64,000 nucleotides of DNA. It comes from Piromyces finnis finn. Taxonomy: Eukaryota; Fungi; Neocallimastigomycota. The stretch is taken from contig MCFH01000001.1 of NCBI GenBank assembly GCA_002104945.1, forward strand, positions 1,860,001 to 1,924,000. Reading direction: 5' to 3'. Position 1 is the stretch's first letter. The number at the start of each line of letters is the position of its first letter. A model generated the notes under the pieces. The model searched no databases. It was not told where the DNA came from and worked only from the letters and a program-made list of their open reading frames with translations. Positions 1-64,000 of this stretch are shown here, piece after piece. The position numbers and the translations under genes are program-made.

Positions 1-30
1 ATTGATTGCTTATATAAATTTTTAAATTAG

Positions 31-880
31 TACGCTGAATATAAAATGTTGTTTGATAATAATCATCCAAGATGTCCAATATGGAAAAAATATTTTGATG
101 AAACATCTAAATTCAGATGTTTTATAAGCGGTGCTCCTTTAAATCCAATGGTCAAAAAATGGTTTAAGGATACTTTAAATATTAATAGTATTTCTTGTTT
201 TGGATCATCTGAAGGTAGACTCATATTATATGAAAATCATACTGATCCACTATTACCGGGTGAAGAAGGATATTTTTGTAGAATTCCATGGATTGACTTC
301 CTCTTAAAACCACTTAATGATGATGATCCTAATATCGGTGAACTTTATACTCATTCTGATGTCTCTGTTCTTGGCTACTTTGGAAGAGCTAAACCTGGTG
401 AATTTTATGATTCTCCTGTTCCAGGAATGCGTTGTGACATTGGCACAGCTAATGAATCTAATGAATTTAATGAATCTAATGAAAATGGTGGAAATGGTAG
501 AAATGAGATTGTTGAAAATAAAAATATATTAAACAAAACAAATGAAAATTTCTCTAACAAAATTCAAGCAAACTAATATATTATCAAGAAAATTGAATAA
601 ATACTTCTCTCCTGCCATCCTCTTCAACTACGGTAATACTTATGCTCTAGCTATATTCATTACTGGAAATACAGAAAAAAGAAATAAAGACTTTAAAGAA
701 TCTATTTCTTCTTCTTCACCTCATGAAAAATAATGAAAAGATCGCTATCATCGGTATAGGTCTTCGTTTACCTGGCGCTATTAACAATGCTAAATCTTTA
801 TGGATGTCTTTAGCTAAAGGAGAGGATTGTGTTTTACCACCTCTTAAAAACAGAGACTTACATCGTAATTACGTTAATAA
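31..880 (+). pseudogene. Fragmented tandem paralog of the A-T-KS gene (last-exon relic with two large internal deletions and a frameshift; any earlier exons lie outside the window)
   Basis: After an AG acceptor at 29-30 it aligns to 4111-4534, then jumps to ~5115-5234, then to ~5505-5815 of the intact gene. 280-448 is identical to 4366-4534. The ACP GIDSL serine is deleted, a small deletion near 728 shifts the frame, and homology stops at ~880. Confidence 0.9.
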
Positions 881-2226
881 AATAAATATAAAATTAATAT
901 TATATATATGACGAAAATAATGCATTTTATATTTTCTTTTTTTTTTTGTAATATGGTTAAATTATAGAAAAAAAAGATATTATTTTATATTTTTTCTTTT
1001 TCATTAGCTATTTTTATTATTATTATTAGTATTAGTATTATTATTATGTTTATGTTTATTATGTTTATTATTATTTCTAAAAAAAAATGTTTTGTTTTTT
1101 ATGACAAATTTTTATTGCCTGAAATAATGAGATTTTAATAAACCTATCATCATAATTACAAAAATAAATGTATACAGTAACTATTATTGTATACATTTGC
1201 TTTTGTAATTCTGAAAAAGAAAATATTAATATTATTATTCTGATCTTTTTAATCTTATCCACTATTCACTATAATAAAGAAAATACAAAGTTAAATATAT
1301 TAGTCATATATTAAAGTATGTCCAGTATATTTACTTATTGTAACACTATATTAAAAAATTTAAAAAAAATGAAATAAAGCCTAAATATTGTATTATATAA
1401 ATAAAATTTAATTAAAATGGGAAATCTGTATCCTAAAATACAAAAAAAAAAATAAATTCTATGGTCTTTATTAAAAATATAAAAAGATATATTTTTGTTC
1501 ATTTCATTATAGTGATATATATATCTATTATGGATATGATTAAATATTATTTATTTCATTATTTTCTATGCCCATATGTCCATTATATAAAAATTATTAA
1601 ATTAAGTAATTAATATAAAACCTTTTTTTAATTTTAAAAAAAAGGTTTGTTAAGTAAAACATAATTAAAAGCAGTTCTTTAATTATATTAACAGTTACAC
1701 AAAATTAAATTTCTTAATTTTCTTTAAAATAACATTTTAAAAAAAAAAAACAATTTACCTATAATTATATTAAATAGAGTTTATAATGTTGATTAATAAT
1801 TTCTATTCCTTCATTAAAAAATAAATTTATTATTGGATAATTAATTAAAATAAATATAAATCGTTTACATAGTTTTTCTTCAAAACAAAAAACATAATTA
1901 ATGATTTCTTTATATGGAAATGAATGAAAAATAAAAGAATTAAAAAATAAATTGATTTAGAAATGTAGTTTGATTATTGGTTATTATTTATTAATTGAAA
2001 AAAAATATATATTTTTTTTTATCTTTATCGAAATAAAATAAAATATAAATACCTATTAAATAACATTTATTATATATTTTTAGTAGTAAAAAAAAAATAA
2101 ATAAATAAATTTCAAATTCCATATTATTCATATTTATAATTTATAACAAATAACAATAGAAATATTAAAAAATTATTATATTTATTCTGTAAATAATAAG
2201 AAGAATTTAATTTAAAATATATAGAA

Positions 2227-2455
2227 ATGGTTTTTATTGATGAAACTGATTTTAGAGGTAATCTCGCTTTAGAAAAAAAACTTTTTTTAACTACTGAAGA
2301 TGAAGAAACGTACGTATATAATATAATATAAATATATTTTTAAAAAGAAAAAACATATATTCAATTATTTTTTTTAATTGAATCTCATTTTGTAATTACT
2401 TTAATTCCTCTTCCTCCTCATTATTAATTATTAATTATTATTATTATTATTATTA

Positions 2456-2486
<31 letters not shown>

Positions 2487-2487
2487 C

Positions 2488-2583
<96 letters not shown>

Positions 2584-2671
2584 GTTTATTATTATGTTTA
2601 TTATTATTATTATTATTATGTTTATTATTATTATTATTATTATTATTATGTTTATTATTATTATTATTATG

Positions 2672-2712
<41 letters not shown>

Positions 2713-5700
2713 GTTTATTATGTTTATTATTATTATTATATTTATTATTATGTTTATTATATTTATTATTAATATGTTTATTATTATTATATATCTCATA
2801 AAATAAAAATATTCTTTTAGAAAGATATTATATGACTCTGATAATATAATCGATAAAATCAATATTCGTTTCAGTGGTGTTGTTAAAGATAAAGAAGCAA
2901 TTATTGCAAAAGAAAATATTTTACCTATACCATTCAAAGGTGTTCCAAGTCCAAATTTTCCTGAACCTTGGTTAACCGTATCTTTTGAAGAATTTCTTTC
3001 TCTTATTAAAGCTTTAGCTTACGTTCTAAAAAAGAAATATGATTTTGCCCCTGGAACAAGAGTAGGTATCATTGCTAATTCTCTACCAATGACTCAATTA
3101 ATGATCTATGCTTTATGGATGATTCGTTGTATTGTTGTTAATATCCCACCAAAACTAGGTAATGACGTTAAACAATATTGGGTTAAACATTGTGATGTTA
3201 AAATGATTTTCTATGATATGAATTTCAGACCTTCAACAAATGAGGAAGAAAATAAAAAATTAAACAAGCAAAGCCAATGGATTTGGAAATGGTATCATGA
3301 TTTAACTGAAGAAGATGAAGGTTTAAGTGCTGGCAAAGAAGGTGTTTTAATGTCATACATTTATGATGAAGAATTCCGTAATGAAATTTTACAAACAAAA
3401 TTAGAAGGAAAGGGTTATGAAAGAAAAGGTGATAAAGATGATGTTCTCACAGTTATTGGTACTTCATCTTCTTCTCAAGCCATTATTAAAAATGGACAAT
3501 ATTCTAGTAAGTTAAATTATATACTATTCAAATTACAATAAATTTTAAACTATGTATCTAAAATTCATTCTTTTATTAATATTTTTCAAAAATTAAGAAA
3601 TGAAATTCGTTCCATGGCAATGTGTCCATATTGTAGATAAATATAATGCATATCGTGCACCATTTGTAAAAAAATATTCACCATTATTCAAGCTGTAAAG
3701 TTTCATTTTATAGTGGCATAACTATCTTTATATTAATAATTTCAATATATTGATTTAATTATTTTTTACATTAAAAAATTTTCATTTTTAATAAAATAAT
3801 TAATAATAGTGTACCATTCCATCATGCTATGGGTGTAGCTTGTACTATTGGTTATTCAATTGGTAATGGTAGTGGTATCATTTATCATACCCAACAGTTA
3901 CAAGATATTGGTTTCATTCCAGAAATGGTATTAGATGATATGGCAGAAACAAGGCCTCTTAATACTTTCCAATTCCCATTCCATGTAACTATTTTTACTT
4001 ATTTTATAAAAAAACATAAATTATATTATTTCATATTTATTAATTAAAATATCTATAACTTTTTTTACTATTTAATATATTTTTTTCATATATTAATAAA
4101 AATACTATAGTATGGTGAATATAAAAAGTTGTTTGATAATAATCATCCAAGATGTTCAATATGGAAAAAATATCTTGATGAAACAAAAGAACATAGAAAT
4201 TTTGTTACTGGTGGTGGTCCTTTAAATCCAATGGTCAAAAAATGGTTTATTGATAATCTTGATGTTTATATTACTAATGGTCTTGGCTCAACCGAAGGTG
4301 GTAATATTATGTTTGAAGATTATGTAACCCGTCCACCAATTCCAGGTGAAGAAGGATACTTTATGAGAATTCCATGGATTGACTTCCTCTTAAAACCACT
4401 TAATGATGATGATCCTAATATCGGTGAACTTTATACTCATTCTGATGTCTCTGTTCTTGGCTACTTTGGAAGAGCTAAACCTGGTGAATTTTATGATTCT
4501 CCTGTTCCAGGAATGCGTTGTGACATTGGCACAGATGAAATCTTTGTTAATATACACGGTAAAAGATATTACAAAACTAATGATATAGTAAAACGTTCAC
4601 CTATTTCTGGAAGATATAGATATGTTTCTAGAATTGATAGTATTATTACATTTGCAACAGGTTTAAAAATGAATCCTCTACCATTTGAGGGTGCAATCAC
4701 TTATGAATGTAAAAATATTACTCGTTGCTGTCTCATTTTAGATTTCACTCAAACTGAGGTGGTTTGTTTTGTCGAACCAAATTGGAATGAAATCATCATT
4801 GACAATAAAAATTTCGATACTTCGATCGATCCTTCAACTCTTGACAAAGAAACTATTAAATCTATGAATAAGGCTGCTAAACAGCAAACCTGGAATAGCA
4901 TTTACAAGGTTTTGATGGATGAAAAAAAGAGCTTAACTAGTTGGACTAAACAATTAACTATCAATAATATTTATATTATTGATTATGGAAAAAAATTCCC
5001 AAGCACAGATAAAGGTTCTCTTTCAAGAAGAGTTGCTAGATTACAATACAATCATGTTTTAAAATATATTTCTAAATTAATCAGTGGTGAAATTACCGAA
5101 ATTCCTGATGAACCTAATGAACCTAATGAATCTAATGAAAATGGTGGAAATGGTGGAAATGAGATTGTTGAAAATAAAAATATATTAAACAAAACAAATG
5201 AAAATTTCTCTAACAAAATTCAAGCAAACTTTAATAAAAGTACGGTTGATAAGATTCTTGATATGGAAGATAATGAAGACATTTCAAAAAATGATAATGC
5301 AAAGAATATTAAAGTCAAAAAGGAAAATTCAAATGAAATTAAAAAGAGTAATGAAGAAATTACTAAAGAAATCGAGGATTGTATAATGCTTATTTATCAG
5401 TCAATTAAAGAAATTATTCCTTCAACTCCTGACTTCGAATTATTCAATCCTGAAAATCCTTTCAATATTTATGGTATTGATTCACTCTCTACTATCAAAT
5501 TAACTAATATATTATCAAGAAAATTGAATAAATACTTCTCTCCTGCCATCCTCTTCAACTACGGTAATACTTATGCTCTCGCTAAATTCATTACTGGAAA
5601 TACAGAAAAAAGAAATAAAGACTTTAAAGAATCTATTCCTTCTTCTTCACCTCATGAAAAGAAAAATAGTGAAAAGATCGCTATCATCGGTATGGGTCTT

Positions 5701-8373
5701 CGTTTACCTGGCGCTATTAACAATGCTAAATCTTTATGGATGTCTTTAGCTAAAGGAAAGGATTGTGTTTTACCACCTCTTAAAAACAGAGACTTACATC
5801 GTAATTACGTTAATAAACCAAGTGAATTGTTAGATCCATCAGAACATAATATCCCTCGTTTAGGTCTCTACGATACTAGATCAAATGTTGCAAAACCATC
5901 TCAATTTGATGCTGCTTTCTTCAACTGCTTACCTGACGAGGCTTTATCTCTCGATCCAAGGCACCGTTGGATCTTAGAAACAAGTTGGGAAGCCTTAGAA
6001 AACGCAAATATTGCTCCTAATTCTTTAGAAAACTCATCTACTGGTGTTTTCGTCGGAATTAACGATGATCATGAATACTCGGATTTAATGACTGAATGTG
6101 GTATTGAAACATCAATCGCTAGTCATGGTTCAAGTCCAAGTGGTATCGCTGGTCGTTTAAGTTATTTCTATCGTTTATACGGCCCTTCTTTCACAATTGA
6201 TACTGCTTGCTCAACAGGTGCTACCGCACTTCACACTGCTTGCCGTTCATTACAACATCATGATTGTAACTTATCTATCGTTTCTGGTGTCAAATATATG
6301 TATTCTTCAAAGAACTTTTATAAAACATGTGCTGCCAGAATGACTTCACCACATGGTCGTTGTGCTACTTTCGACAAAGATGCTGACGGTTTCGTTCCTA
6401 GCGAAGGTTGCGTCACTTTTATTTTAAAGCGTTTAGACGATGCTATCCGTGATAACGATAACATTCTTTCTGTCATTTTAAGTACGAGCAGTGGTCAAAG
6501 TGGCCTAAGACAATCTATTAGCGCTCCTTCCTCCGAAGGTCAGGCTATCAACATGCGTAAAGCTATGGAATTTGCTGGTATTAAACCCGAAGACGTTTCT
6601 TATATTGAGGCTCATGGTACTGGTACTCCATTAGGTGATGCTTTAGAAGTACATGCTTTGAACGAAATTTATGCTGGAAGTCATACAGAAGAAAATCCTC
6701 TCGTTGTTGGTAGTATTAAAACAAATATTGGTCATACTTGCGAAACTGCTGGTTTAGCTGGCATCGCTAAAGTCATTGTTTCTATGCAACACAAATATAT
6801 TCCAAAGAATCTTCACTTTAATACTTTAAATCCAGAAATAGATGTTAAATTAATTCCAATGAAAATCCCAACTAAAAATCTACCTTGGAATTCTTCTGAT
6901 CCAAATAAACCACTTATCGCTCAAGTCTCTTCTTATGGTCTTCAAGGTAGTATCATTCATGTTTTCTTAGAAGAATACATTCCAAAAAACAAAAATACTG
7001 AAAATAACGCCAATAAAAAAAATAGTAACATAAATAGAAATGAAAATGAAAATAAAAACGAAAATGAAAATGAAAATGAAATTAACGAAATCAATAATAT
7101 TAATGAAAAAGAAAATCATATTTTAACTATCAGTGCTAAATCTTATTCTGCTTTAGTTGAACTCTGTAACACTTACATGAATATTCTTGAAAAAATGGAA
7201 GATGAAGAAGAAGATGTTAGTGATCTTTGTTACTCTTCAAACGTCGGTAGACAACAATTTGATCAATTTAGATTGTCTGTTTATGGTAAAAATGCTTCGG
7301 AATTATACAATAATCTTGAAATTGAATTAGAAAATTTTGAAAATAGGAATAAGAAAATAAACGATAATCAAAGTAGCTATAATAAAACTATTAATCAAAC
7401 AATAAATATTATTGCTGAAGATAATTTGGCTTCAGAAAATGCTTTTCTTCTTTATAAATTACTTGTTGAATTATACATATCTCGTCCTGAATTTAAACAA
7501 GCTATTGAAGAATGTGACGCTATCATTACTACTATTAGTAATAATGTCTATTCTTTAGTTGATGACATTACTTCAAAGGGAATGAACATTAATGAAAGCA
7601 AGGATGCATTCAAAAACATAAAAATACTTTCATTCTATTATGCTTTATCTAAAGTTATAGATAATGAATTGAATGTTAAACAATCCATTTTTGGTGGATA
7701 TGGACTTGGTGAAATCATTTCTATTTTAATCAACAATGGCATTTCTATTGAAAAAGCAATTCGATTCCTAAAACTTGTCAATGATAATAAAAGTGAAAGC
7801 GATCCTGAGCAATTTATCAACTCTTGGTACAACGAAAAGGAAAAAGATGAATATAAATTAAATAAGAATGTCTATTCTTCTAGCCATCAAAAGATTCTTA
7901 CTGCCGGTGAAGTAATTTCAAAAGATTATTATATTATCCTATTCCACAGTTTAATTGATACCACTACCACTAATAAGGAAGACCAACTAACCAATATGTG
8001 CGACTTTATAATAAAAGAATATGGTAAAAAATGTAAAAACATTTCAATTTTCAGTAATGATACAATCATAAACAATCAATTAAAAGATAATTTTGAAAAG
8101 AAAGCTATTGAAAATAAATATTCACAAATTACTGGAAATAAAATCATTTCCTTCTTTGAAGACAAATGTACAAGCATTGATGAATGTGAAAAAAGAATTT
8201 TACCAAGATTTATTTCAAATAATTATAATGTTAATAATGAAATTAATTGGAATGAATTTCATAAAAGAATTAATAGCCTTAACTTTAAAGAATACTATCA
8301 TAAAAAGGTTGAATTACCAAACTATCCATTCCAACGTTCAACTTACTGGCCAAAACCTATTAATAAAAAGTAA
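2227..8373 (+). CDS. Hybrid adenylation (ANL/NRPS-like) - ACP - ketosynthase - degenerate acyltransferase protein, ~1767 aa; exons 2227-2309, 2821-3506, 3598-3694, 3810-3984, 4111-8373
   Basis: All introns are GT-AG with consistent phases (5304 nt total). A-domain motifs: VPFHHAMG, GSTEGG, YKTNDIV, RIDSII..GLKMNP, PSTDKG. ACP GIDSL (Ser 5482-5484). KS triad DTACS (Cys 6208), EAHGTGT (His 6613), NIGHT (His 6733). KS-AT linker ISAKS...GR. AT-like GYGLGE (7696-7713). Post-AT linker YPFQRSTYW lies just before the stop. Confidence 0.93.
2420..2790. repeat. Compound (TAT)n microsatellite with TATGTT interruptions inside intron 1 of the A-T-KS gene
   Basis: Direct reading: tattattat runs interrupted by tatgttt. 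Confidence 0.95.
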
Positions 8374-8600
8374 TTTTAATAATTCCCTTAATACAAACAA
8401 TAGAAATTATTATATTTAGTAAAAAAAAAAAAGTTTAAAAATATTTATTTATATTATTCCTAAAAAACATAATAATTATTTATAAATTTGTAGTTTTATC
8501 ATAATAAAGATAAAAAAAAAAATACATCCATATATATATATTTCTTAAAATTTCTTAAAAAAAAACAGTAATGAAATAGAAATAATAATAAATAATAGTA

Positions 8601-8637
<37 letters not shown>

Positions 8638-9829
8638 TAAAAAAAAATATAAAAATCATTATTAATAATAATATTAGTAGCATATAGTAAAATAAAACAT
8701 TTTAAAATTGTGTATTAGCAAAATTCTATGGGTTAGCTTTAAAAAAATAAATTATTATTTCACAAGTTATAAATTATTCAAAATTGTAAACTTAAGATTT
8801 AATATTAAAAAGCACTATTATAAAATAACAATTTTTTTAAAAATAAATAATAAATTTTAAACAATAAAAGAATTAAAATAAAAAAGTGGAGTATTGAAAA
8901 TTCAAAATAGATATAAACACCCGAAACTCACTATTCTAAATTGTTTATTAAGTACAATACTAAAAAATTACATTTTATATTTTTTATATAAAGATAAACG
9001 CTTTTACAAAACATTTATATTATCTAAAGTATAATAGTATATAGGCAGTCTTCACTTTTTTTTTTTATAACCCTTTTCTAAAAAAAAACCAAAAAAAAAA
9101 ACCAAATAAATCTTATATTAGACTTAATACCATACAATATTTCAAAAATTTCTATAAAATATAAAATTAATACATTGAGGAACTCTAAAATATTACATTT
9201 AACAATATAATGAATAATGATATTTATAATCTATGATTATATTATCCAACTTTGATAAGAAAAAAATAATAAACTTCTTTACTAATTTGATATTGAATTA
9301 AAAACTGAAAGAATAATAAAAATAAAATATATGTTGTTTTTATTTTTAGTGCAATAATTTTTAGTTTAATAATAATCATTTCAACAATATTAAAAAATAA
9401 AAAAAAAATTAATAACTGTGTATATTTATCATTATATATAAAAAAACTTTTATTAGATTCTGAAGTATTAATAACAATAATAAAAAAGAAACAGTGAAAA
9501 TTTATAAAATTTAAATGGGTTAAGTTATTTCATATTTTTTGATATGAAATTAAAATATATATTTAAAAATTATTAATGCTATGCTTATATAAAAGTTTAA
9601 AAATAAAATTAAATAATAATGATAGAAAGAAGATTTTCTTAAAAATTCTTGAAGAATTCCTCAATTTAATAATTATACATATAGACATTCTTGAATAATT
9701 CTATTAAAATAGAAGATAAGCTCCATTTATGCCAAAAAAATTGCTTATTTTTATAATTAAAAATAATGGGTATATAAAAATCTAAATTATTTTTTTATAA
9801 TAGGAAATAAATTGTTGATTATCATTAAT

Positions 9830-10335
<506 letters not shown>

Positions 10336-10392
10336 ATAATAATAGTATAATATAACCATTATTAATCGTATATTATTGTTTAGGCAATCAAT

Positions 10393-10565
10393 TTTTGGAA
10401 CACGGTCTAGACTTTGTAATATAAATCATGTGAGATTACATTAATTTATAAAAAAAATATTAATTACAATACTAATTGTAAAACAAATATTTATTATTGT
10501 TTAGGATATATTAACTTTTGGAACATGGTCTAGATTTTGTAAAATAAATCATGTGAGATTACATT
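10393..10565 (+). repeat. Two ~50-bp near-identical direct repeats (period ~123 bp), each with a GTCTAGA core
   Basis: ttttggaacacggtctagactttgtaatataaatcatgtgagattacatt versus ttttggaacatggtctagattttgtaaaataaatcatgtgagattacatt; a third degenerate unit gaacatgatctagac lies at ~10596-10610. Confidence 0.9.
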
Positions 10566-11003
10566 GATTTATCATTATTATTTACATCATTTGTAGAACA
10601 TGATCTAGACTCTATGATTACAACAATACTAAGTATCATGTATTAATTTTTAAAACAAACTATGTAATAAAATTATGTATATTTATTATTATGTACAATT
10701 TCATAAATATAAAAAAGAATATAGTCTAGACTCAATTATAATTAAATAACATTAGTAATAATATTAATAATAGTAAGAAAAAAGAATAAAGTCTAGATTT
10801 ATTGTAAAATTAAAAATTATATTAAATTATTAAGGATATGAAATATTTTATTATGAATTTCTTGATAATGAAAAACACAAAAAAAAACTAATATATTTAA
10901 ATTTTATATATTTAAAAAGTTGGAGATATACTTTTAATATGAAATAATGATTGTACTTTGTGACTATTTTAATTAAAATATATTATTTCTTTTTTTCTCT
11001 TTC

Positions 11004-11034
<31 letters not shown>

Positions 11035-12654
11035 TATTATAAAAAAGAGTGATTTTAAATTCGATTATGAATAAAAGAATTCAACTTTTTTTTCTATGTT
11101 AAAAAACATCTTTTCTTATTGGTTATTGTTTTCTGTAAAAATCAGTTTTTTTTATAAAGTTACATACCCATTATCATAATGATTAGTATAGTTTATTAAT
11201 TATATTTTTGACCAATAATGTTTTAAAGTTTAATAATAATATAAATAGGAAAGAATTGTGTTCTGGAACTTCTTACTATTATTTATTTTGTTGTTTTATT
11301 ATTGATGATATTGTTCACCAATTCAATAATTTTGACTATAAAAGGAAATAATTTGCCATTTTTAATTAAGATATGATGTAATAATTAAAATGGAAAGGTG
11401 TTTATGGTGGATAATTTATATTTTTATTGAATGAAAGAAGTACCAAAAAAAATAAACAAATTAAAATATAATAATAATATATATATTTCTAATATTTTAT
11501 TAATATATGATGAATAAAAAATTAATAATATTTATTATATATTTTATACTATTGTAATTATAATAGATTAAAATATTTAGTATTCTAAATATTTAGTGTT
11601 ACACCTGCTCCATGTTATAGATCTAGACCGAGTTTCCTTTTTTGTTAAGGATAAACGAAATTTAGACCTTTTTAATTTATTTTAATACATAAATCAGTTA
11701 ATAATTAAATTATTAAGATTTTCTTTTCAATTTTAATTATTATACTATAAAGTTTTAATTTATTATGAAATATTTAATTAAAAATTTGACTTAATAATTT
11801 ATTTGTTAGGTTTTTATGGAATAAATTTTATATGTAAGTATTGTTTTTGATATTAAACTCTAATTAATAATTATTAATCTTTAAGTAAGGAATATTTTCT
11901 ATCATAATAATATTAATAAAAAAAAAGAGGAATGACTATTTTATTTTGAATATTAAAGATTTTCCAATAGGAGATTATATTTAAAAACCATTTTTTTTAT
12001 ATGGTTATAAGGGTTAATGTCATGCTATTAGAGTTATGAACAAATAACAATTAACACCAACTCTATTCTTATTTAAAATGCTTGAATTCTAAACTTTTGT
12101 CATTATTAAATGTAGCTTTATTTATTTATTACATCATTTTGGCTAGGCAGTTTATTTTTTTTTATTAATAAATATTTTAAATATAGTTATAACAATTAGA
12201 ATCTAGACTTTTTTTTCTCTAAATACTAAGTTATAATATTTTATTAACTTTAATATTATTCATTTATTTTCATTTAATATTAAAGTTTTTTTTTAATTTA
12301 CTATAAAATTCATTATTATTTTCGTACATACGAAAATATTTAAAATTTGTTATATAATAGAATTAGAACTAATTACTATTGTAATTTTTCATTTAAATTA
12401 AATTTCCATTTTTATTCAACAAAAAAGGATTCCAAACCTAGATCTTTTAAAAAGGAGCTTCTTTTTTTTTTTTACTTTAATTTCATTGGTCACCATTAAT
12501 AACCATAGTAAAATAACAAAATATAATTATCATTAGAACACAAAATAATTGTTTATAATAATTTTTTATATATAAATTTATATATTTGTAGAATACTAAA
12601 AAATTGAAGTAATTTAGTATAATTTTATAATTTTATAAATGTAATATATTATTT

Positions 12655-13230
<576 letters not shown>

Positions 13231-16200
13231 TAATGGTATATAAAGTAAAGAAATAATAACTGATAACCGTAACTTTTTTGAAAAAGTAATAATATAAACA
13301 TATTAAAGGGTTATAATTTTTATTCTATTTTAAAAATTTAATAAATACAAAAAAGATAATATAATATGGACTATATTAAAAAAATAGATGATTTTAGTTT
13401 AAATACTTTTATTTATATTTAAAATTCATGTACAATATATTAAGAATATAATAATATAAACCAATAGTGTTGAAATATAATATATTAGTTTATATTAACA
13501 AATAATTAAAATAATACTAATTTTAATTATTATTATTCTTTTTTCTGTATTTTTTTTAATTTATTATTCATTTTTAATTAAATTAGTTTTAAAAAGAAAA
13601 AAGCCATAATTTTTAGGGATAAAACATTATTGTTATAAAAAGTTATAATAAATATATAACATAATTATATAATTATTAATAATTTGTTCTATTCTTATTT
13701 TTATATATTTTTTCTTTTATTACTATATTAATAAGTAATACAACTATAAGTGTTTAAATATAAAAGATAATTATAAAGATTTTTACTTTTCAATTAATAA
13801 TGTAATTAGTTTTAATCAAAAATAGAATTTTGAAATTTAATTAAACTAGGACTATTAAAATTTGTTGATTTATAATTATCAAGAATAGTTGAAAAAGACT
13901 GATTAAATAAATTAGTCATTGTTTGTTGTAATGTTTAATACAGCACTTTAATTTCTATATATATAAAAAATTAAAGTATAATCATGGTATTGTTCTTTAT
14001 AAAGTATATTAATTAAATAATTTATTAAAATGATTTACTATTTTTTTCAAAAATCAATGAACCGTTCAAGCTTTTTTATAAATTAATTTATTATTATTAT
14101 TTAAGTAAACTAATAATTTTTTAAATTTATAACTTTTAATTTTAGCCAGTTAAAGCTTTATTATTATTCTGATAATAATGATTATAATTATAGTTTCAGT
14201 TATCATTTTTATTATTCATTATGCTTTTTTTTTTTTTTATAATAAAGTTTAGAAGATTTCATGTGATTAATATATTTATTCATATTATTGTTAAAAAAAA
14301 AACGTGTTAAATTTTTTACTTTTAATTTAGGAGGAGAATAGGAAGGTGATAAATGGAATATAGGAAGTTTTTAAAAGAAGCCATAATTTTAAAAGATTTT
14401 TTAAAGGAGAAATAAATTTTAATATATTTATTAAGCTATCTATTTTAAATTATACTACTACTATTACGGATATTAATAATGATGAAATATATAATTTATA
14501 ATAATATTACTTTTAAATAGGTATCAAAACGATATTTAATTTATATATAATAGTTATTATAGTTTAGATAATCCGTTTATATAAATAATTGTAATAATTA
14601 TTATCCCTTATAATTAGTATTATAATAATATAATTTTTTTTATAAAAATATTTGATAAAAATAAATATTTTGATTGACAATAGTAATCCTACTAGAATTA
14701 TTTGTTAAAATTACCATTTTAAGTAAATTAATAACCAATAGGTCATTATTAAATAAACTAATATAATATTTGTCATTTTTTAGACGTATGATCCATTGCT
14801 TTTACCAACAACAATAATAAATTATTTCTTTTTTTTATTTATTTATTATTATTAAAATTTAGACTTTTTATTAATAATATTTATAATAATATTTTTTAAA
14901 CTATAATTAAAAGATATATAATATTATTTTTTTTTAAAAAATAGTAAAAATGGTAATTTTATTTTATATCTATTAAAACAAATTTTATTTAGATTTCGTT
15001 TAATTCTTTTTAGATGGTTATATAGCAAGAATTTCCAAGATAACTACTCTATTAATTATATCATCATAAAATTAATTCTTTTTAACATTTTAATAGTTTG
15101 ATTTTTTTTTTTTGTATTAATGCTTATTGATAATCCCAAATATTAGTCATTAAGGCTTTAATTGTCCCATTCGATTATACTTATTCAAAAATTGCTTTTT
15201 GTTAATAAATAAAAAGATATAATTTAATTAATACAAATTTATCAATATTTAATATTTAAATAGTATATTAATTTAATATTTTAAAAATTTAATTTATTCT
15301 TATATTTAATTATTGAATAAATTGAATTACTCATTTTAATTTTATTTATTACTATTTTTTTAAATATATTTTTTTTTTTAAAATACTTTTTATTAATGAT
15401 TAATATCAGTCATTTCTGTCATTATCAATGTCAATTACTTGTTGAACTAATTAATTATTAAATTTTATTTATTTTTAAAATTAATATTATAAGGTATTGA
15501 TATTTGAATATATATAAATATAAAAAAAGTATTATTACCAATTTTATATATTTTTATTAATTCCTTATTCTAGCCAAATGTATATTCATGTTTATAGTAA
15601 AATATAATCAATCCTTCTACCTGCTCTTATAGTTATCTTTTTTTCTTCTTTATTTATTTAATAAAAAAATGGGATATTTTTTTAATTTATTCTTTTCAAT
15701 TTGGAATTTGTTTTTTTAAAAAAAAGTCTAGATTGTTTTTATTTTATTTCTGAAAAATTTAATATATTTATTCATTATATAAAGTAGACTAAAATAATAC
15801 AATTTAATATATAATGACTTTAATGTAATATATAATACAGAGCCGCCGTATTTAATTGATTTAAATATGGTTAATCCATCGTTTTACTTTAATTTTTTAA
15901 ATGGAGAATGAAAATTATAAATTAAATGATAAATCATAATAAATATATAAAGTTTATACAATATATATATATTAAAGAAATAATAATAATAAGAATAAAA
16001 ATTAATTTCTCTTTATAGAAATTATAATATTTTGTGTTTAATTCCTTTTTATTTTTAGCTTGAATGATGTGCCTATTATTAATTTAGAAATGGTCTAGAG
16101 AGTAAACCTTAACTTTATTTGAAAATACAGTATTGTATTAAAAAAAAAAAAAATAATTAAAAATTATTTCTGAAACATGATAATTATAAAAAATATGTAA

Positions 16201-18734
16201 TATTTTAATTAAATTAAATTAATAATTTTAGGTGATCTTTTTTTTTTTTTTTATTCTATTAGTAATTTTTATTTTTAAAAATGGTGTTTCATTATGAAAT
16301 AAGCCTCTTGTTTTATTTATTGTTTTTAATATTAATCAATTATTTTTTTTTAAAAATCTTGTTATAGGTTATTATTGTTATAAAGTAATAATATTCTATG
16401 TTATTATAGGATCAGATAGTTTTACTATATAAGTGATCATCACTAATAAAAAGTATTCAAAGAGAAAAAACCTTTTAACTATTAATGAAAAAAAGAGAAA
16501 TATTTTTTATTATTATTTATATAATTAAATATATATAAACGAATAGTATTAAGAGTTTACTGAATCGTCCATTCAATTATGTATGATAAAAAAAAACTTT
16601 TTAAATAGGAGAGAGCATAGCCAATAAAAGATAATTCATAAAAAAAATATTTTATTAATGACTACTAATAGACTATGAGTATTTATTGGTAATCTTTTTT
16701 TTTATCAAATAACAATTCTTCTTAAATAATAATTATTACTGCTATTATTTTAAAGAATTTTAATTTACAATGAATTGAAAAGTTATGTGAAAAAAGATAG
16801 AATTGATTTTGGTATATCATTCTAAAGATATTATTAAAGTTCATTATTAGTAATAATGACTTTATACATGATTTTAATTAATATAATGATAATACTTATT
16901 GTTGTATCATTATTGTTCATTCACCCATTACTACAATGATATTTTATTCAATTCTCACTAGTATTTTTATTTTCAAAAAAAAAAAAAATTAGTATTTTTT
17001 TTAATTATTATTCATTAAAATTAATGAATCCTGTACCAATAGAAATTTTCTTTTATCATTTTTATTTTAAAATTTTTTAATTATAAATTTTATTGTTTTA
17101 AATTAATTTGTTTATTTATTTTGCCATTATTGTTATTGTAATCACAATAAATATATAATTTATAATAGAATAATAACATGAAAAGCACTTTATTATTATT
17201 AACAATTTATTTTTATTAAATTTAAACTTTAGGTGTCATCAATTGTTTTAATAAAATGGAGACAGTAAATTAGAATAATAATAAAAAAGAAATTTAATTT
17301 TTTAAAAGATAATACTAATTTTTTTAAAAAAAATAAATTAAAAAAAAAAGCATCTTTAAAGGTCTAGAATCAAAAATTTTTGTGCTTTGTATTTCCTATT
17401 TAGGAAATTTTTTTGATTTTGTTACTTTAAATTAACTTTATTTTTAATTAAACTTTCAATTTAATATATTATTTTTGATACTTATTCCGATATATATCGG
17501 AACCAAAAAATTTTATTTAATTTAATAATAAATGTTATTTTTGGTTCATGAAAACTTTAAATTAATTTTCAACATATTGTTATTAATATATTTTGATTTA
17601 GTATTATCATATAATTTAATATAATCACAATATATATAAAAATTGTTTATGTTAAACTGTAAGTTGTGGAACGTGTAAATAAAAAAGTCTAGACTTTTGT
17701 TTTTTTTTGAGTTAAAAATATCTGTTATCAGTTGATCCTTTATTATCTACCTGTATTATCAAACTAATTAAATTAATATATATTTTAATATATATATAAT
17801 AATAAATATAATATATTTTAATTTATATAATGTCTTTAATTAATATATATTATATAATAATGCTATTATGTTATTATATTTAATTTTTATTTCAATTTTT
17901 AAAGTTTTATTTCAAAATAAAAATAAAAATATATGAAATAAAGTTTTAAATAAGAATTAGAATCTAGACAGTTTTATATTAATAAAAATAAAAAAGGATG
18001 TATCATCCTTTATTTAAATAGTAATAAAAAATTTACATTATTAATTATAATCGTATAAAAATTGCAAATGACTTTTAAATGCCTTTAACTTCTCATAACA
18101 ATATAGCTTTGCATCAATAAAGCATTTAAAACGAATTATAACTATTTAAAGTGCATTATTTATTTGGAACAAAAACAAACTGTAAGTAAAAAAAGAATTT
18201 TTATTATTAAATAGGGTTCGTATATCTCTTAAAAAAATAAAACCATTCTAGCTTGTTTAAAAAAAATAATTGAAGTATTGTATAATATATTATTTTATTT
18301 TAAATTTCTGTATTTTCTATTATAGGATATATTATTTCTACTTTTTTTATTATAAATTAGTATGGGAAAAAGATGTTTTAAAAGAAAAAGTAAATATTAT
18401 TAGCAATATATCCCTTATAAAAATAAGAATCATAATAGATTATAAAAAATATAGCTGAATTATTTTCTTTTTTTATTTAAAATATATAACCTTTTATTTT
18501 TAATTTTTATTTTGATTTAAAGTTTAAAATGTTTATTTTCATTAATATTTAAAGTTTTATTTTTGGAACAAAAAATATAAAAGAATTAATTTTTTAATGA
18601 TAATTTATTTTAATATAAACTAATATTAGTATAATTATATAAAAGTAATTAAATTTATTTAAAATAGACGATAGGTAACACACAATGAGTAATAATAGTA
18701 ACGCAGATAATATTAATAAAACCACTTATTGATA

Positions 18735-18818
18735 AATTGGTTAATAAACATAATAATAATAAACATAATAGTAAACATAATAGTAAACATAATAATAATA
18801 ATAATAATAATAATAAAC

Positions 18819-18913
<95 letters not shown>

Positions 18914-18959
18914 CATAATAATAATAAACATAATAATAATAAACATAATAATAATAAAC

Positions 18960-19048
<89 letters not shown>

Positions 19049-19085
19049 CATAATAATAATAATAAACATAATAATAATAAATAAG
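18735..19085. repeat. Compound (AAT)n satellite with AAACAT interruptions
   Basis: Direct reading; immediately followed by a TCTAGAC-ttttg-GTCTAGA hairpin. Confidence 0.95.
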
Positions 19086-21977
19086 ATAATGACAAATTAA
19101 ATATCTAGACTTTTGGTCTAGATTTTTATAATAAGTAATAATAACATAATAACAAAATATAAATGAATGAATGAATGAATAAATAATTAAATGAATGAAT
19201 GAATTAATAAATAGAAATTATATAAAAAGTATATACATTTTTTCAACTTCATACTGCTGCTTACACATTTAATAAGATAAATTTCCTTTTCTTTTTATAC
19301 ATTAATAATCAAACTTTATTTCATTAAAATTACTTTTTTTTTTCTACCGTTAACATTAGGAAAATAAAAAGAATGAAGTTTTAATTCAGGATATAACTTG
19401 GAAAATACAATAAACTTTTAATATTAGTAAAATAATAAAAAAAAGGAAAATTTCAAAAATTCTGTATAATTTTTAATTCATTGTTATAAATTTAAATAAA
19501 TATAGAAATTAAATTTTAATATTATTTTTCTTTTTTTTTTTTTTTGTTATTACTATTATCTTTATTATTATAGTTTTTTTACTATTATTTATTCCCCCTT
19601 TAAAATAAAAATAAGAGTCTGGAATTTTTTTTTTTTAAAAACTTCTCTTTTATAATAGTTAATTAAATAATATACGAATAGTATAATTTTATATATTAAT
19701 AAAATTCATTTTTAAGTTGATTTTAATTCAATACAGATAATATTCATTTTGTATCCAGCTGAAATAATAATATTAAATTCTTTTCTCATCAAAATAATAC
19801 TAAACAGTTATTTGTCTATATAATTAATTGTTTCATATTATGGATTAATTGGTTATACAGTAAATATTTTGTTATGAATTAACATATATAGTAATTTTCC
19901 ATATATTATAAATTAAAGTTTTAAATTTTAATTAATATATTTCTAAACAATTTTTTTCATGGACTAGAGATCTAGATTTTTTTAATGTTTTTTTTAAAAA
20001 ATAAATAAAACTAAATTAAAAATATTTAATACAATATATTAAATATATTCAAAAAATAAATTATTATAATATATTCATTTATAATCAAATTATTCCACTA
20101 TGATATGGTCTACTTAACTTTAATTCATAATTAATATGGATCATAATAGTAAATTATTCAATATTAATTTTAGTATTATCAATTGGATTTAGGTCTAGAT
20201 TTTTTTGAAAAAAATAAAACCTTATTAATGATTTATTCATCATTTAATTTTATGTATTATTCATTAATAAAGTTTTTATTTATTGATAAGGCTTTTTTCT
20301 TTTCAAGTGGATAGTTTTGTTGTTGTTGTTGCTGTTGTTGTTATGATAGATTGATAAAAGAGCTATAATATAGTGGTTATTTTACATTTAAATTATATTT
20401 TTAGAACGGTAATAAAAATTCAAAAGTACAGATGACAAAACCTAACATAAAATAATAAATGTCATATTGATGAAATGACGATGAGAATAATTAGAAAGAG
20501 TACAAATGATTATTATCCATCATTCATAACAATAATAATTTACTATTATTATTTACTATTATTATTTATTTATTATTATTATTTAAAAATTTCATTATAG
20601 TTTTTAATTAATTTATTAAGATGATTTAATTCTCCATATATTAAAATAATATTAAAGATTTTTTTTAAAAAAAAAGTCTAGACCAAATTTTTTTTTAAAA
20701 ATTTTAACATTTAATTTTATTGGTGAAATGGCAATAATTAAAATAATTATTAATAGTTAGTGACAGATGAACTTTTCAATATAGTCATAATAATAATAAC
20801 TATTTAGAAAAATCGTATAAAGAAAAGGGATTAAAGAATAGTATTCAAAATACATTTTTTTCCTTTTTTATTCTTATTCGTAGTCATGCATGTACTATAA
20901 TTGATCATCACTAACCTTTTTAATGTCATAAAGTTCATTATTTATAAAATTTACGAATGATATAATTCATAGTTTTCTATTTCCTTATCTATCATTTACT
21001 TTTTAAATCAATGAAGAAGCGGTAATATTTTTTTTAATAATAGTGTTCAAGTTGAGTGTTTTTTAAAAAAAGGATGATAATACTTATTATTATTCTATAT
21101 TATTTTTAATATTATATTTTAACATATAAAAAGTTTTAAGGTTGACTATCCTGAACCTGGACCTCAATTTTTTTTATTATTGTAAAAAAATAAAAAATAG
21201 CATTCTTACTATTATTTTAAATTTTAATTAAAATTTTGATATTTTTTTTTTATTATTCCACATCAAATTTTCCTTTTTTTTATAAATCATTACTATTATA
21301 GTATAATGAATAATAAATAAAATTTCATTGTTTAAATATATATGATTATATAAATTTCATTCATTACAACAGAATGAAAAATAAATTAATATATTAGCTA
21401 TTATACATTATACTAATATATTTTAATATAAATTGGTATTTAAAATAATATATTTAATACTATATATGAAAAGTTAAAATAATTTAAACAATTGCAAAGA
21501 TATTAATATACATATATATTCTAATATATATAAGCTATATTTATTATTCATTATAATAATATAATTTAAAAATATAATAAATAAATAAAAAAGTTTAATT
21601 TATATTAAAAAATGGATACCATGAATTATATAGTCAATAAATTACAATTCAATTGCCAATTACACTACAATATATTGTGATAAATACATATAACCATATA
21701 ATACAATATATTAATATATGAATACAATTTTTAATTTATTTTATTAATTTTATTGTGGTATAATAATAGTTGAGAATTTCAAATGAAAAAAAAGTATAAA
21801 AAGTTCAAAATTTCATTCTAAATTTTTTTTTTAATTCATTCAATTTTATAGTATTAAAATCATTATAAAATAATATCTTTTAAAAAAAAATTTAAAGTGT
21901 ATTATTAAAAAATAACAAAAGATTAAATTAAAACTTTTTATAATTTTGAAATATAATTTTTAAATTAATAAACAAAA

Positions 21978-61851: not shown

Positions 61852-64000
61852 TATTGGAAATTGTGAAAATAAAATACATTCCAAAATAATATTTTATGTA
61901 TTTTTTATGTATTTGTATTTTATAAAATTATAAATTAATATTGTACTACATTTTTATTCTTTGGTTATTTTTTAATAAAAAGATTTTAAGAAAGTTACAA
62001 TATTTATATTATAAAATAAATATAAATAAATAAAAGATTATAAAAACCCAAATAGTTTTATAAATAAATTTAAGTGTAAACTAAATTTATCTGACAGATT
62101 AAGAGTCTCAATTGCTCTTATATTTAAGTAAGTTTTTTTTTAATATGTCAAAAAGAAAATCTAACGGAGATACTGGATCAATTCCTATATTCGATCCTAC
62201 CGTTATGCTAGGAAAGGTCACTTATGAATTGAACAATAAAAATTTCATAACGTGGCAAATGTTTATGAGGAATATTTTAAATTATTATGGTCTTGAAGAT
62301 TGGGTTGATGAAAACAAAACCCCAAAGATCAAAAGTGACGAAGGAATGGATATCGACGGAGAAGAATATCTAAAGGCACCTTTTGAAATCAATACCTACT
62401 ATGATAAGAACGTAACCGAAGATGACTTAAAAACAGATAGGAATATCCAATTTTTAATTAGGTATACTTTAGGCCCAAACTGCCAACAAGATATCCAAGA
62501 TAGGTCTTTAACAAGCTACGAAATGTGGAAACTATTAGAAGACATTTATTTAGGGGATAAAATAGAAAGAAAGAATAGGCTTATTAAGGAAACAAACTCC
62601 TTAAAATACGACCCGAAAGAAAGTTTCTCAAGATTTGTAAATAAGTTAAATTCCAACTTTAATAAGTTAGAACAACTAAATGTGAAAATAGATGATGAAG
62701 AAAAAATTGGTTTACTGTATCAAGCCTTACCAGAAAAATATAGGAAAGTCACAGTCCTTAAGCATGAAGACTGGGAAGAATGCAAAAAGGACACAGCAAG
62801 AATGATAGATAAGATGAACAAATTTGATCCGAAAGAGAAATCTGAAACCTTCGGAATTAGACATATCTTTAGTGTTGAAGGTAGTTACAAAGGTGATAAA
62901 AGAAAGGAAAGTACTAAATACTACCGCAACAAACAAAGTAATAATCATAATAAAAATACAAATAAAGGAAAAGAAAAGTCCAATGAAGAAAGAAATTGGA
63001 ATAACAAAAATAAACAAAACATTACATGTTATTTTTGTCATCAAAAAGGACATACTGTAAAACAATGTCGTATTCAAAAAGAACTTTCAGAAGAAGTTAC
63101 AAGAAGGCTAAGAAAAGAGAAAAATAAAGGCAAGGAAGCATTTTTAGCAACAGGTGAAATAGTAAATAAACAAACCACTGAAGACTTTGAACCAGAAGTT
63201 GGATATCAAGATTTGTTTACAGTTGATTACAATACATTATTTGACAATAACAATGATGAATGTAATAATAAATCATGCAATTACGTATCTTGTGAAAATG
63301 TACCTACAAGTTTTACTACATGGACTTTAGATTCTGGTGCTTCTAATCATATTACCAAAGATATAGGAATTCTCAAAAATGTTTTTGAACATGTAGAACC
63401 AATCAATTATGCAAATGGAGCGACTACAAAGTCAACACATATGGGTGAAGTAAATGGATCTATTAATGAAGAACCAATAAAATTAGAAGATGTAATGTAC
63501 ATCCCAGATGTAAAACGAAATTTAATTTCTGTTGCCAAGTTAGTTAAAAGTGGCTACCAAATAATCTTTGATGAGAAGAACAATAATGTATTTGCATATA
63601 TAAAAGATAAGAAAACAGATAATGTATACGAAGTTAAAGCAAATGAATATGATGTATTCAATTTGTACATCAAAGAAGGTAATGTAGTTAATAATTACTC
63701 AATGTGCGATAATGTACGAAACAATGGTGAATACTGGCATAGAAGAATAGGGCATCTGAATTTCAACAATAATGATGAAAAGAACAATATTCACAATTGT
63801 ACAATATGCATGAGAAGCAAAATGAAAGAAATCCCTCATAAAAGGTCAGATAGTAGAGCATCAAGTGTTTTGGAACTAGTACACATCGATTTGGTAGGTC
63901 CAATCACACCATCAACTCATGACAACGTATACTTTTTAAGTATCTTAGATGATTACAGTCGATATGGATGGGTAATATTTGTCAAGAATAAAAGTGATGT
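61852..64000 (+). mobile_element. Ty1/copia LTR retrotransposon (5' part; left boundary tentative)
   Basis: Gag-protease-integrase order. Putative eroded LTR starts at tattggaaa (61852), and a PBS-like gattataaaaaccca lies at 62036-62050. Confidence 0.8.
62145..64000 (+). CDS. Copia gag-pol polyprotein, open to the window end (absent from the ORF track because it has no stop)
   Basis: Uninterrupted frame from ATG 62145: gag (NFITWQMFMRNIL), zinc knuckle CYFCHQKGHTVKQC, protease WTLDSGASNH, pre-integrase WHRRIGHLN..CTIC, integrase LELVHIDLVGP...ILDDYSRY. Confidence 0.95.
   Translation, partial: MSKRKSNGDTGSIPIFDPTVMLGKVTYELNNKNFITWQMFMRNILNYYGLEDWVDENKTPKIKSDEGMDIDGEEYLKAPFEINTYYDKNVTEDDLKTDRNIQFLIRYTLGPNCQQDIQDRSLTSYEMWKLLEDIYLGDKIERKNRLIKETNSLKYDPKESFSRFVNKLNSNFNKLEQLNVKIDDEEKIGLLYQALPEKYRKVTVLKHEDWEECKKDTARMIDKMNKFDPKEKSETFGIRHIFSVEGSYKGDKRKESTKYYRNKQSNNHNKNTNKGKEKSNEERNWNNKNKQNITCYFCHQKGHTVKQCRIQKELSEEVTRRLRKEKNKGKEAFLATGEIVNKQTTEDFEPEVGYQDLFTVDYNTLFDNNNDECNNKSCNYVSCENVPTSFTTWTLDSGASNHITKDIGILKNVFEHVEPINYANGATTKSTHMGEVNGSINEEPIKLEDVMYIPDVKRNLISVAKLVKSGYQIIFDEKNNNVFAYIKDKKTDNVYEVKANEYDVFNLYIKEGNVVNNYSMCDNVRNNGEYWHRRIGHLNFNNNDEKNNIHNCTICMRSKMKEIPHKRSDSRASSVLELVHIDLVGPITPSTHDNVYFLSILDDYSRYGWVIFVKNKSD

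Follow-up and report, generated by a model that had tools for sequence, protein, structure and literature searches.

An adenylation-carrier-ketosynthase protein of anaerobic gut fungi with a degenerate acyltransferase, and a possible supply of its extender unit in trans

Hispidin synthase (HispS) forms a styrylpyrone from caffeic acid, which it activates; nnHispS and its basidiomycete orthologues consist of an adenylation domain (A), an acyl carrier protein (ACP), a ketosynthase (KS), an acyltransferase (AT), dehydratase and ketoreductase domains (DH, KR) and a second ACP, in the order A-ACP-KS-AT-(DH-KR)-ACP. In trans-AT modules of polyketide synthases (PKSs) a linker or docking region devoid of AT activity comes after the KS and the extender is delivered by a discrete AT, and in split bacterial systems such as FadD32-Pks13 and CylA/CylB a fatty acyl-AMP ligase (FAAL) and an ACP serve a KS-AT protein. 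Anaerobic gut fungi hold many orphan biosynthetic genes, and we know of no PKS product from them that has been tied to a gene. Their PKS4 type (Swift et al. 2021, PMC8106346; e.g., Piromyces finnis 342883, P0049 in our set) is KS-AT-KR-ACP followed by a C-terminal region. Here we describe a P. finnis gene at positions 2227-8373 (+) of a 64,000-nucleotide, extremely AT-rich stretch of contig MCFH01000001.1 (positions 1,860,001 to 1,924,000; hereafter the window), deposited as ORX61108.1. Its five exons encode 1767 aa in the order A, ACP, KS, KS/AT linker and degenerate AT, the protein stopping at the post-AT linker, so that its first four domains stand in the same order as those of HispS. On balance, we favor reading this expressed A-ACP-KS-AT(dead) enzyme as a starter-loading and first-condensation module that would receive its extender in trans, rather than as a self-sufficient hispidin-type synthase.

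The decisive part of the protein lies behind the KS. An earlier note on this DNA had called the gene a stand-alone A-ACP-KS synthase; the domain order was borne out by a hidden Markov model (HMM) domain search, and the ACP serine (Ser805) and the KS triad by the spliced translation, but about 470 residues after the KS had been left out of that description, and the layout is A-ACP-KS-AT(dead). A profile of these residues built from 22 family members matched the CurL KS-AT didomain 4mz0 (E 1e-41), the match spanning the linker domain up to the nucleophile elbow and then picking up again at the post-AT linker. The AlphaFold2 (AF2) model of the tail (pLDDT 81.5, pTM 0.84) had KS-AT and AT structures as its best Foldseek matches (TMq 0.55-0.63), and by profile, AF2 and Foldseek alike the remnant still folds as linker plus AT large subdomain. 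Alignment with the live ATs of sister clades shows that the family AT lacks the GQGxQ motif and the serine nucleophile, the elbow GHSxGE being replaced by GYGLGE in the window protein and by G[YFE][GDKE]xGE in other members. The entire small subdomain (about 70-90 residues, among them the Arg region and xAFHS) is deleted as well. Pfam on the exon translations returned no Acyl_transf_1 (PF00698) match. The protein ends 6 residues past PNYPFQRSTYWP, and every family member stops within a few residues of PxYPFQRxxxWP.

No competent malonyl AT is present in any member of the family, and no acceptor (second, C-terminal) ACP, reductive domain or thioesterase/release domain was found in any member examined; as in a trans-AT module, the KS has no functional AT in cis. 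An AT that has lost its nucleophile, its oxyanion motif and its small subdomain, in a protein with no second ACP or release domain, argues that the extender is supplied in trans, and the universal loss of AT function, acceptor ACP and release domain argues that the extender, and probably onward processing as well, comes from other proteins. The enzyme thus probably works together with partner enzymes. A self-sufficient synthase is hardly compatible with a protein from which live AT, acceptor ACP and release domain are all missing.

This layout is not peculiar to one gene. About 24 homologues were collected from Piromyces, Neocallimastix, Anaeromyces, Orpinomyces and rumen metagenomes, and in all of them the A, ACP and KS residues are kept and the AT elbow is non-Ser; one layout across all these gut-fungal homologues marks a conserved, lineage-specific family. 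As far as homology searches reach, the family is confined to anaerobic gut fungi and comprises several paralogues, and P. finnis carries at least three intact paralogues. Identity to the ORX61108.1 gene product is highest in the KS (55-89%), followed by ACP and A; it drops to 25-70% in the AT-like tail, some positions of which are nonetheless invariant. The Lys of GSIKTNIGH is invariant across the family. A dead, trimmed AT and lost C-terminal domains are also what would be seen in a decaying remnant of a HispS-like PKS without a catalytic role, and a broken paralogue does lie directly upstream of the gene. Such a functionless relic is, however, very improbable, because the A, ACP and KS motifs are all conserved in the homologues from several genera, the gene is spliced and transcribed (see below), and several intact paralogues are present per genome. 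It stands last among three rival explanations, behind (likeliest first) a self-sufficient HispS-like synthase and a protein with a non-elongating KS.

The relationships of the KS were examined in two trees, one quick (114 rows) and one careful (44 rows), both unrooted and sampled from the best homology-search matches, which gave the same placement. The family KSs form one clade (support 100/99) whose sister is the gut-fungal PKS4 type (100/99), and the two together join basidiomycete HispS-like PKSs and a chytrid PKS. The resulting fungal clade (100/99) is separate from 28-82 bacterial KSs. By these trees the family descends from the fungal PKS lineage that holds gut-fungal PKS4 and the basidiomycete hispidin-synthase-like enzymes. 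Although bacterial PKSs are among the high-ranking matches by E-value, acquisition of the KS from bacteria by horizontal transfer was rejected, as the trees put the KS in the fungal clade.

The A domain has gone much further. It is extremely divergent, an exhaustive phmmer search giving only 23 matches in 1.8 billion proteins (representatives), and it does not group with ordinary long-chain acyl-CoA ligases. The best matches outside the gut fungi were a 618-aa ANL protein of the chytrid Obelidium, the A domain of a PKS of the chytrid Nowakowskiella and an adenylation-thiolation-reductase (A-T-R) enzyme of Gongronella (Mucoromycota). A word-indexed profile search with the family A domain returned gut-fungal proteins only, which left no outgroups for an A-domain tree, and HMM bit scores and hhalign were used instead. 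The family A-domain HMM scored 77 bits against Nowakowskiella, 71 against Obelidium, 69 against the Gongronella A-T-R enzyme, 37 against a gammaproteobacterial ligase, 8-26 against HispS-like A domains (representatives P0095, P0096 and P0149, nnHispS itself being outside the data set) and about 0 against bacterial FAAL-type PKS loaders (P0051, P0098, P0102). With hhalign the probabilities were 99% for Gongronella A-T-R (E 5e-19), 98.9% for Obelidium and 89% for a HispS-like A domain; the best solved relative by sequence profile was a carboxylic acid reductase (CAR), at only E 1.5e-7. The Nowakowskiella sp. protein (KAJ3125228.1, P0136) is annotated KS-AT-DH-KR-ACP-A, which may reflect either a genuine permutation of domains or the fusion of two gene models.

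The comparison with HispS therefore has two sides. Both kinds of enzyme have a PF23562-type A subdomain followed by an ACP with its attachment serine, the Cys-His-His triad in the KS, a Ser-rich non-canonical P-loop, and no thioesterase. They differ in that HispS-type enzymes possess a live malonyl AT as well as a C-terminal ACP, whereas proteins of the window family carry a dead, trimmed AT and stop at the post-AT linker; the window KS is sister to PKS4 and not nested among the HispS-like KSs, and the A domains are only remotely alike. Likening the gene to the front half of HispS was thus right as to architecture and membership of one fungal KS clade, and overstated insofar as a dead AT is retained, the KS is closest to PKS4 and the A domain is remote. 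As judged from sequence, the resemblance to HispS is real for architecture and KS ancestry, and weak for the A domain.

These same data bear on whether the protein could be a self-sufficient, iterative pyrone or styrylpyrone synthase after the manner of HispS, its single ACP alternating as carrier of starter and extender, in which case it would be a candidate source of the gut-fungal baumin-like styrylpyrone. HispS too does without a thioesterase; it is described as an iterative type I PKS that makes two elongations, cyclizes and releases its product (PMC9866795). HispS-like KSs lie in one fungal clade with the KS of the window protein, and Swift et al. 2021 (PMC8106346) detected a baumin-like styrylpyrone, assigned to no gene; in their BLAST search with one S. 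baumii PKS (OCB90292.1) the best P. finnis match was 315942, a paralogue of the window gene. HispS, however, has a live AT and a second ACP, neither of which occurs in any member of the window family, the A domain is related to HispS-like A domains only remotely, and truncated HispS orthologues without DH, KR and C-terminal ACP yielded no product (PMC9866795). We therefore think a self-sufficient synthase unlikely, and hold to the same low degree the particulars it would call for, namely malonyl groups gained by self-malonylation or from a housekeeping transacylase (the MPT of the fatty acid synthase) and release by spontaneous lactonization.

As to what the A domain would activate, Pfam on the exon translations gave AMP-binding (weak), AMP-binding_C_3 (PF23562), PP-binding, ketoacyl-synt N and C, KAsynt_C_assoc and a CurL-like KS-AT linker. 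The A4 motif reads PFHH, as against FDxS in activators of amino acids, and together with the PF23562 subdomain this points to an activator of acyl or aryl acids. The motifs GLKMNP and PSTDKG occur in the domain as first reported, and its assignment to the nonribosomal peptide synthetase (NRPS)-like/CAR type, and not to the amino acid type, agrees with A4, with the PF23562 subdomain, with a CAR as best solved relative and with the hhalign match to Gongronella. The P-loop is unusual (GTSSSSQAIIKNGQ..KMKFVP) and is kept in every family member that spans the region. An AF2 model of the A domain of the Neocallimastix californiae orthologue P0003 (pLDDT 82) was a complete ANL fold by Foldseek; luciferase, CAR, benzoate-CoA ligase, MatB and EntE scored alike, and the fold therefore does not indicate the substrate. 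A structured insert specific to the family lies in the N-terminal A subdomain (window about 3200-3290) and holds an invariant W-x-W-x-W motif (QWIWKWY here; residues 171-175 of P0003, where the AF2 model is confident).

From the architecture, residues, conservation, transcription and phylogenetic placement established here we infer the substrate class, the need for a partner and each of the following catalytic steps. With the residues of A, ACP and KS intact, the expected course is adenylation, loading of the protein's own ACP, transfer to the KS and condensation. The A domain would adenylate a carboxylic acid (aryl or acyl, and not an alpha-amino acid) and would thioesterify it onto the pantetheine of its own ACP at Ser805; the acyl group would pass to Cys1047 of the KS, which, with Cys-His-His intact, would join it to a malonyl thioester by decarboxylative Claisen condensation and so extend the acid by two carbons. 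The extender might be put on this same ACP by the AT of another protein, or might arrive as malonyl-ACP of a partner synthase, for which PKS4 is a candidate (it has live AT, KR, ACP and C-terminal region, and no loader). The beta-ketoacyl product could then be passed on or released by the partner, or could undergo spontaneous lactonization or decarboxylation.

Several points weigh against this proposal. The P-loop (GTSSSSQAIIKNG...KMKFVP) does not follow the canonical TSGTTGxPK, which makes adenylation an assumption; and one ACP may serve in both the starter and the extender role. No trans-acting AT was identified among the window open reading frames (ORFs) or with a PKS4 AT-domain query, which gave no stand-alone gut-fungal AT; this query was not an exhaustive genome search, being word-limited and dominated by bacterial matches, and is not evidence of absence. 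No conserved biosynthetic neighbor was seen at the orthologue loci, nor by tblastx of their flanks against the window, and no biochemically characterized family member was found in the literature.

The terminal KS of the tenuazonic acid synthetase TAS1 acts in a non-elongating way, and a similar role could be imagined here: the KS might be a transacylase, a cyclase or a releasing enzyme acting on the ACP-bound acyl group, or the activated acid might simply be handed on, to a further synthase or a lipid acceptor. The protein has neither extender-loading machinery nor a release domain, and the KS is its last catalytically intact domain, both of which would suit such a role. Against it are the invariance of the Cys-His-His triad of decarboxylating KSs and of the Lys in GSIKTNIGH, the very high KS identity across genera, and the grouping with elongating KSs; a non-elongating KS is accordingly improbable in our view, somewhat behind the self-sufficient synthase.

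Returning to a loading module that takes its extender in trans, the nearest comparison is PKS4, which occurs in the same organisms, shares the KS/AT linker type and has the closest KS relatives of the window gene. PKS4 has a live AT (FTGQGS, GHSLGE, DAFHS), a KR and its own ACP, and lacks an A-ACP loader, so that the missing parts of PKS4 and of the window family are complementary. In comparison with trans-AT modules, most of the AT large subdomain is kept here, and the protein is one fungal module that carries an A-ACP loader of its own. Fungal NRPS-like enzymes and CARs (Gongronella P0137, the best non-chytrid A-domain match by hhalign; the solved CARs 5mso and 5mss, a CAR being the best PDB sequence match) share the PF23562 subdomain and the A-T arrangement; the window protein has no NAD_binding_4 reductase domain and instead carries a KS and a dead AT after the carrier. 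A bacterial TARA metagenome contig (L004, 6396-14406) encodes a FAAL, an ACP, a CylC-like protein, a KS-AT, an ACP and an MBOAT, and the elbow of its KS-AT reads GHGVGE (serine lost), with much of the small-subdomain region absent. An acid-activating ANL enzyme and a carrier protein thus stand ahead of a KS with a serine-less, trimmed AT, and this contig shows a comparable logic spread over separate genes, as an independent case; it differs in having separate proteins, a discrete acceptor ACP downstream, KSs in the bacterial part of the tree and an activating enzyme of the FAAL type (PF23024), in place of the PF23562 subdomain of the window protein.

The consistent catalytic incompleteness of a family that is conserved, expressed, present in several copies per genome and confined to the gut-fungal lineage implies obligatory cooperation between unlinked synthases, which would be unusual for fungal PKSs and would be missed by cluster-based genome mining. 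A wider reading, which we offer tentatively and consider rather unlikely, is that an ancestral HispS-like A-ACP-KS-AT-(DH)-KR-ACP synthase was split in gut fungi into complementary halves: a loader family that keeps A, ACP and KS, with a dead AT and no acceptor ACP, and an extender type (PKS4) with live AT and release and no loader. Such an arrangement, in which common extender enzymes are served in trans by several loaders differing in acid specificity, would be a fungal, unclustered and combinatorial equivalent of a trans-acting assembly line that might turn plant hydroxycinnamates into styrylpyrone-type products. The family is also a plausible candidate for the unassigned styrylpyrone-like chemistry reported from gut fungi.

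Table 1. Features of the gene in the window. Positions are those of the 64,000-nucleotide stretch; residues are numbered in the 1767-aa product; X1-X4 are public sequencing runs, a joint being the two positions brought together in a spliced contig.
Feature	Position	Strand	Basis
Exon 1	2227..2309	+	ATG at 2227, GT donor at 2310; orthologues P0003 and P0005 align at 59-64% identity
Exon 2, N-terminal part of A domain incl. family-specific P-loop GTSSSSQAIIKNG (3458-3496)	2821..3506	+	AG acceptor, GTAAGT donor; joint 3506>3598 in runs X1-X3; contig start at 2821
Exon 3, 33 aa, KMKFVPW...	3598..3694	+	joints 3506>3598 and 3694>3810; MKFV motif family-conserved; P0003 residues 247-277 match
Exon 4, A4 motif PFHHAMG (3814-3834)	3810..3984	+	joints 3694>3810 and 3984>4111; translation
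Exon 5, rest of A domain, ACP, KS and dead AT	4111..8373	+	open reading frame; stop codon 8371-8373
Adenylation (ANL) domain, residues about 40-660	2855..5049	+	Pfam AMP-binding and AMP-binding_C_3; family-conserved motifs; AF2 of P0003
A5 GLGSTEGG	4279-4302	+	motif conserved across family
A7 YYKTND	4567-4584	+	motif conserved across family
A8 SRIDS..GLKMNP	4627-4677	+	motif conserved across family
A10 PSTDKGS, Lys648	4999-5019	+	motif conserved across family
Low-complexity Asn/Glu/Lys-rich linker	5050..5361	+	translation; least conserved segment, 12-70% identity
ACP, phosphopantetheine-attachment Ser805 (5482-5484) in GIDSLS (5473-5490)	5362..5604	+	Pfam PP-binding; D/N-S motif in all members
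Ketosynthase	5656..6954	+	Pfam KS N and C domains, E 7e-65 and 7e-35; triad invariant in family
KS Cys1047 (DTACSTG)	6208-6210	+	catalytic triad
KS His1182 (EAHGTGT)	6613-6615	+	catalytic triad
KS His1222 (GSIKTNIGHT, NIGHTCE)	6733-6735	+	catalytic triad
KS/AT linker domain, degenerate AT and post-AT linker PNYPFQRSTYWP (8317-8352)	6955..8370	+	family profile vs 4mz0; AF2; Foldseek; alignment with live ATs
AT elbow GGYGLGE, replacing GHSxGE	7693-7713	+	alignment with live ATs

The gene was rebuilt from the sequence, every exon border being canonical GT-AG. A 1414-aa ORF at 4129-8373 is 100% identical to ORX61108.1, deposited as "ketoacyl-synt-domain-containing protein" and encoded on a 2.6-Mb contig. 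Contigs from three public runs of two studies carried exactly the joints listed for introns 2-4 (Table 1), all GT..AG, which confirms these introns and shows that the gene is transcribed and spliced according to the five-exon model proposed in the earlier note; for intron 1 the basis is the alignment of orthologues to exon 1 and one contig that begins at 2821. Most of intron 1 is a long (ATT)n microsatellite with interspersed ATG variants (window 2430-2790). The deposited model ORX61108.1 skips exon 3, a segment lying between the P-loop and A4 that is conserved throughout the family and present in P0003. It also adds a low-complexity C-terminal exon (8371-8700), which was rejected because P0003 terminates where the ORF does, all family members stop at the post-AT linker, and one X4 contig is unspliced across 6984-8406, passing the stop codon. 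The public gene model is thus wrong on both counts, 33 aa of the A domain being absent and a spurious tail added, and expression from ORX61108.1 would likely fail.

The gene is orthologous to gut-fungal "PKS-like" genes of Swift et al. 2021 (PMC8106346), who list 704764, 222379 and 315942 as SMURF "PKS-like" genes without a function. The orthologues P0003 and P0005, 61-68% identical to the window gene product, are N. californiae 704764 (on scaffold_146 beside BioY) and A. robustus 222379 (on scaffold_197), both placed as in that list; P0007 is the P. finnis paralogue 315942, and the window gene itself is inferred to be P. finnis 439634. A literature search found no paper characterizing any member of the family, so that the description "uncharacterised system" is correct in that sense, but the family had already been catalogued as "PKS-like", and its consistent incompleteness is the interesting part.

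The broken tandem paralogue occupies window 28-881 and runs on upstream of the window (L003 6779-8350), its frame interrupted. Its pieces match gene positions 4108-4534 (86% DNA identity), 5105-5230 (96%) and 5502-5817 (96.5%), the intervening parts being deleted. Contigs of run X1 with joints 4534>5108 and 5226>5502 mirror these deletions, and the relic itself may therefore be transcribed. At the A. robustus locus (L002 140-4974, scaffold_197) a family paralogue lies about 5 kb upstream of the orthologue; it is annotated only as a 496-aa KS protein and matches the window gene from exon 2 to past the KS. This upstream tandem paralogue was the sole feature in common among the orthologue loci, and the tandem duplication may thus predate the split of the genera.

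Downstream, the ORFs of at least 60 aa in 8400-64000 that were not of low complexity matched only BTB, WD40, SH3, CAP-Gly and copia gag/pol in Pfam; no tailoring enzyme, transporter or phosphopantetheinyl transferase was among them, which bears out what had been said of the ~55 kb downstream, and the Pfam-scanned ORFs of the window included no discrete AT. The absence of a biosynthetic partner within 55 kb agrees with the report of Swift et al. 2021 (PMC8106346), who found gut-fungal core genes isolated or in small clusters. The 13.5 kb directly downstream of the gene (window 8400-21950) has no Pfam-matching ORF and a GC content of 11-17%. At the far end, an ORF at 62103-63998 with copia-type gag, Pol beta-barrel and gag-pre-integrase is a long terminal repeat retrotransposon that continues off the end of the window.

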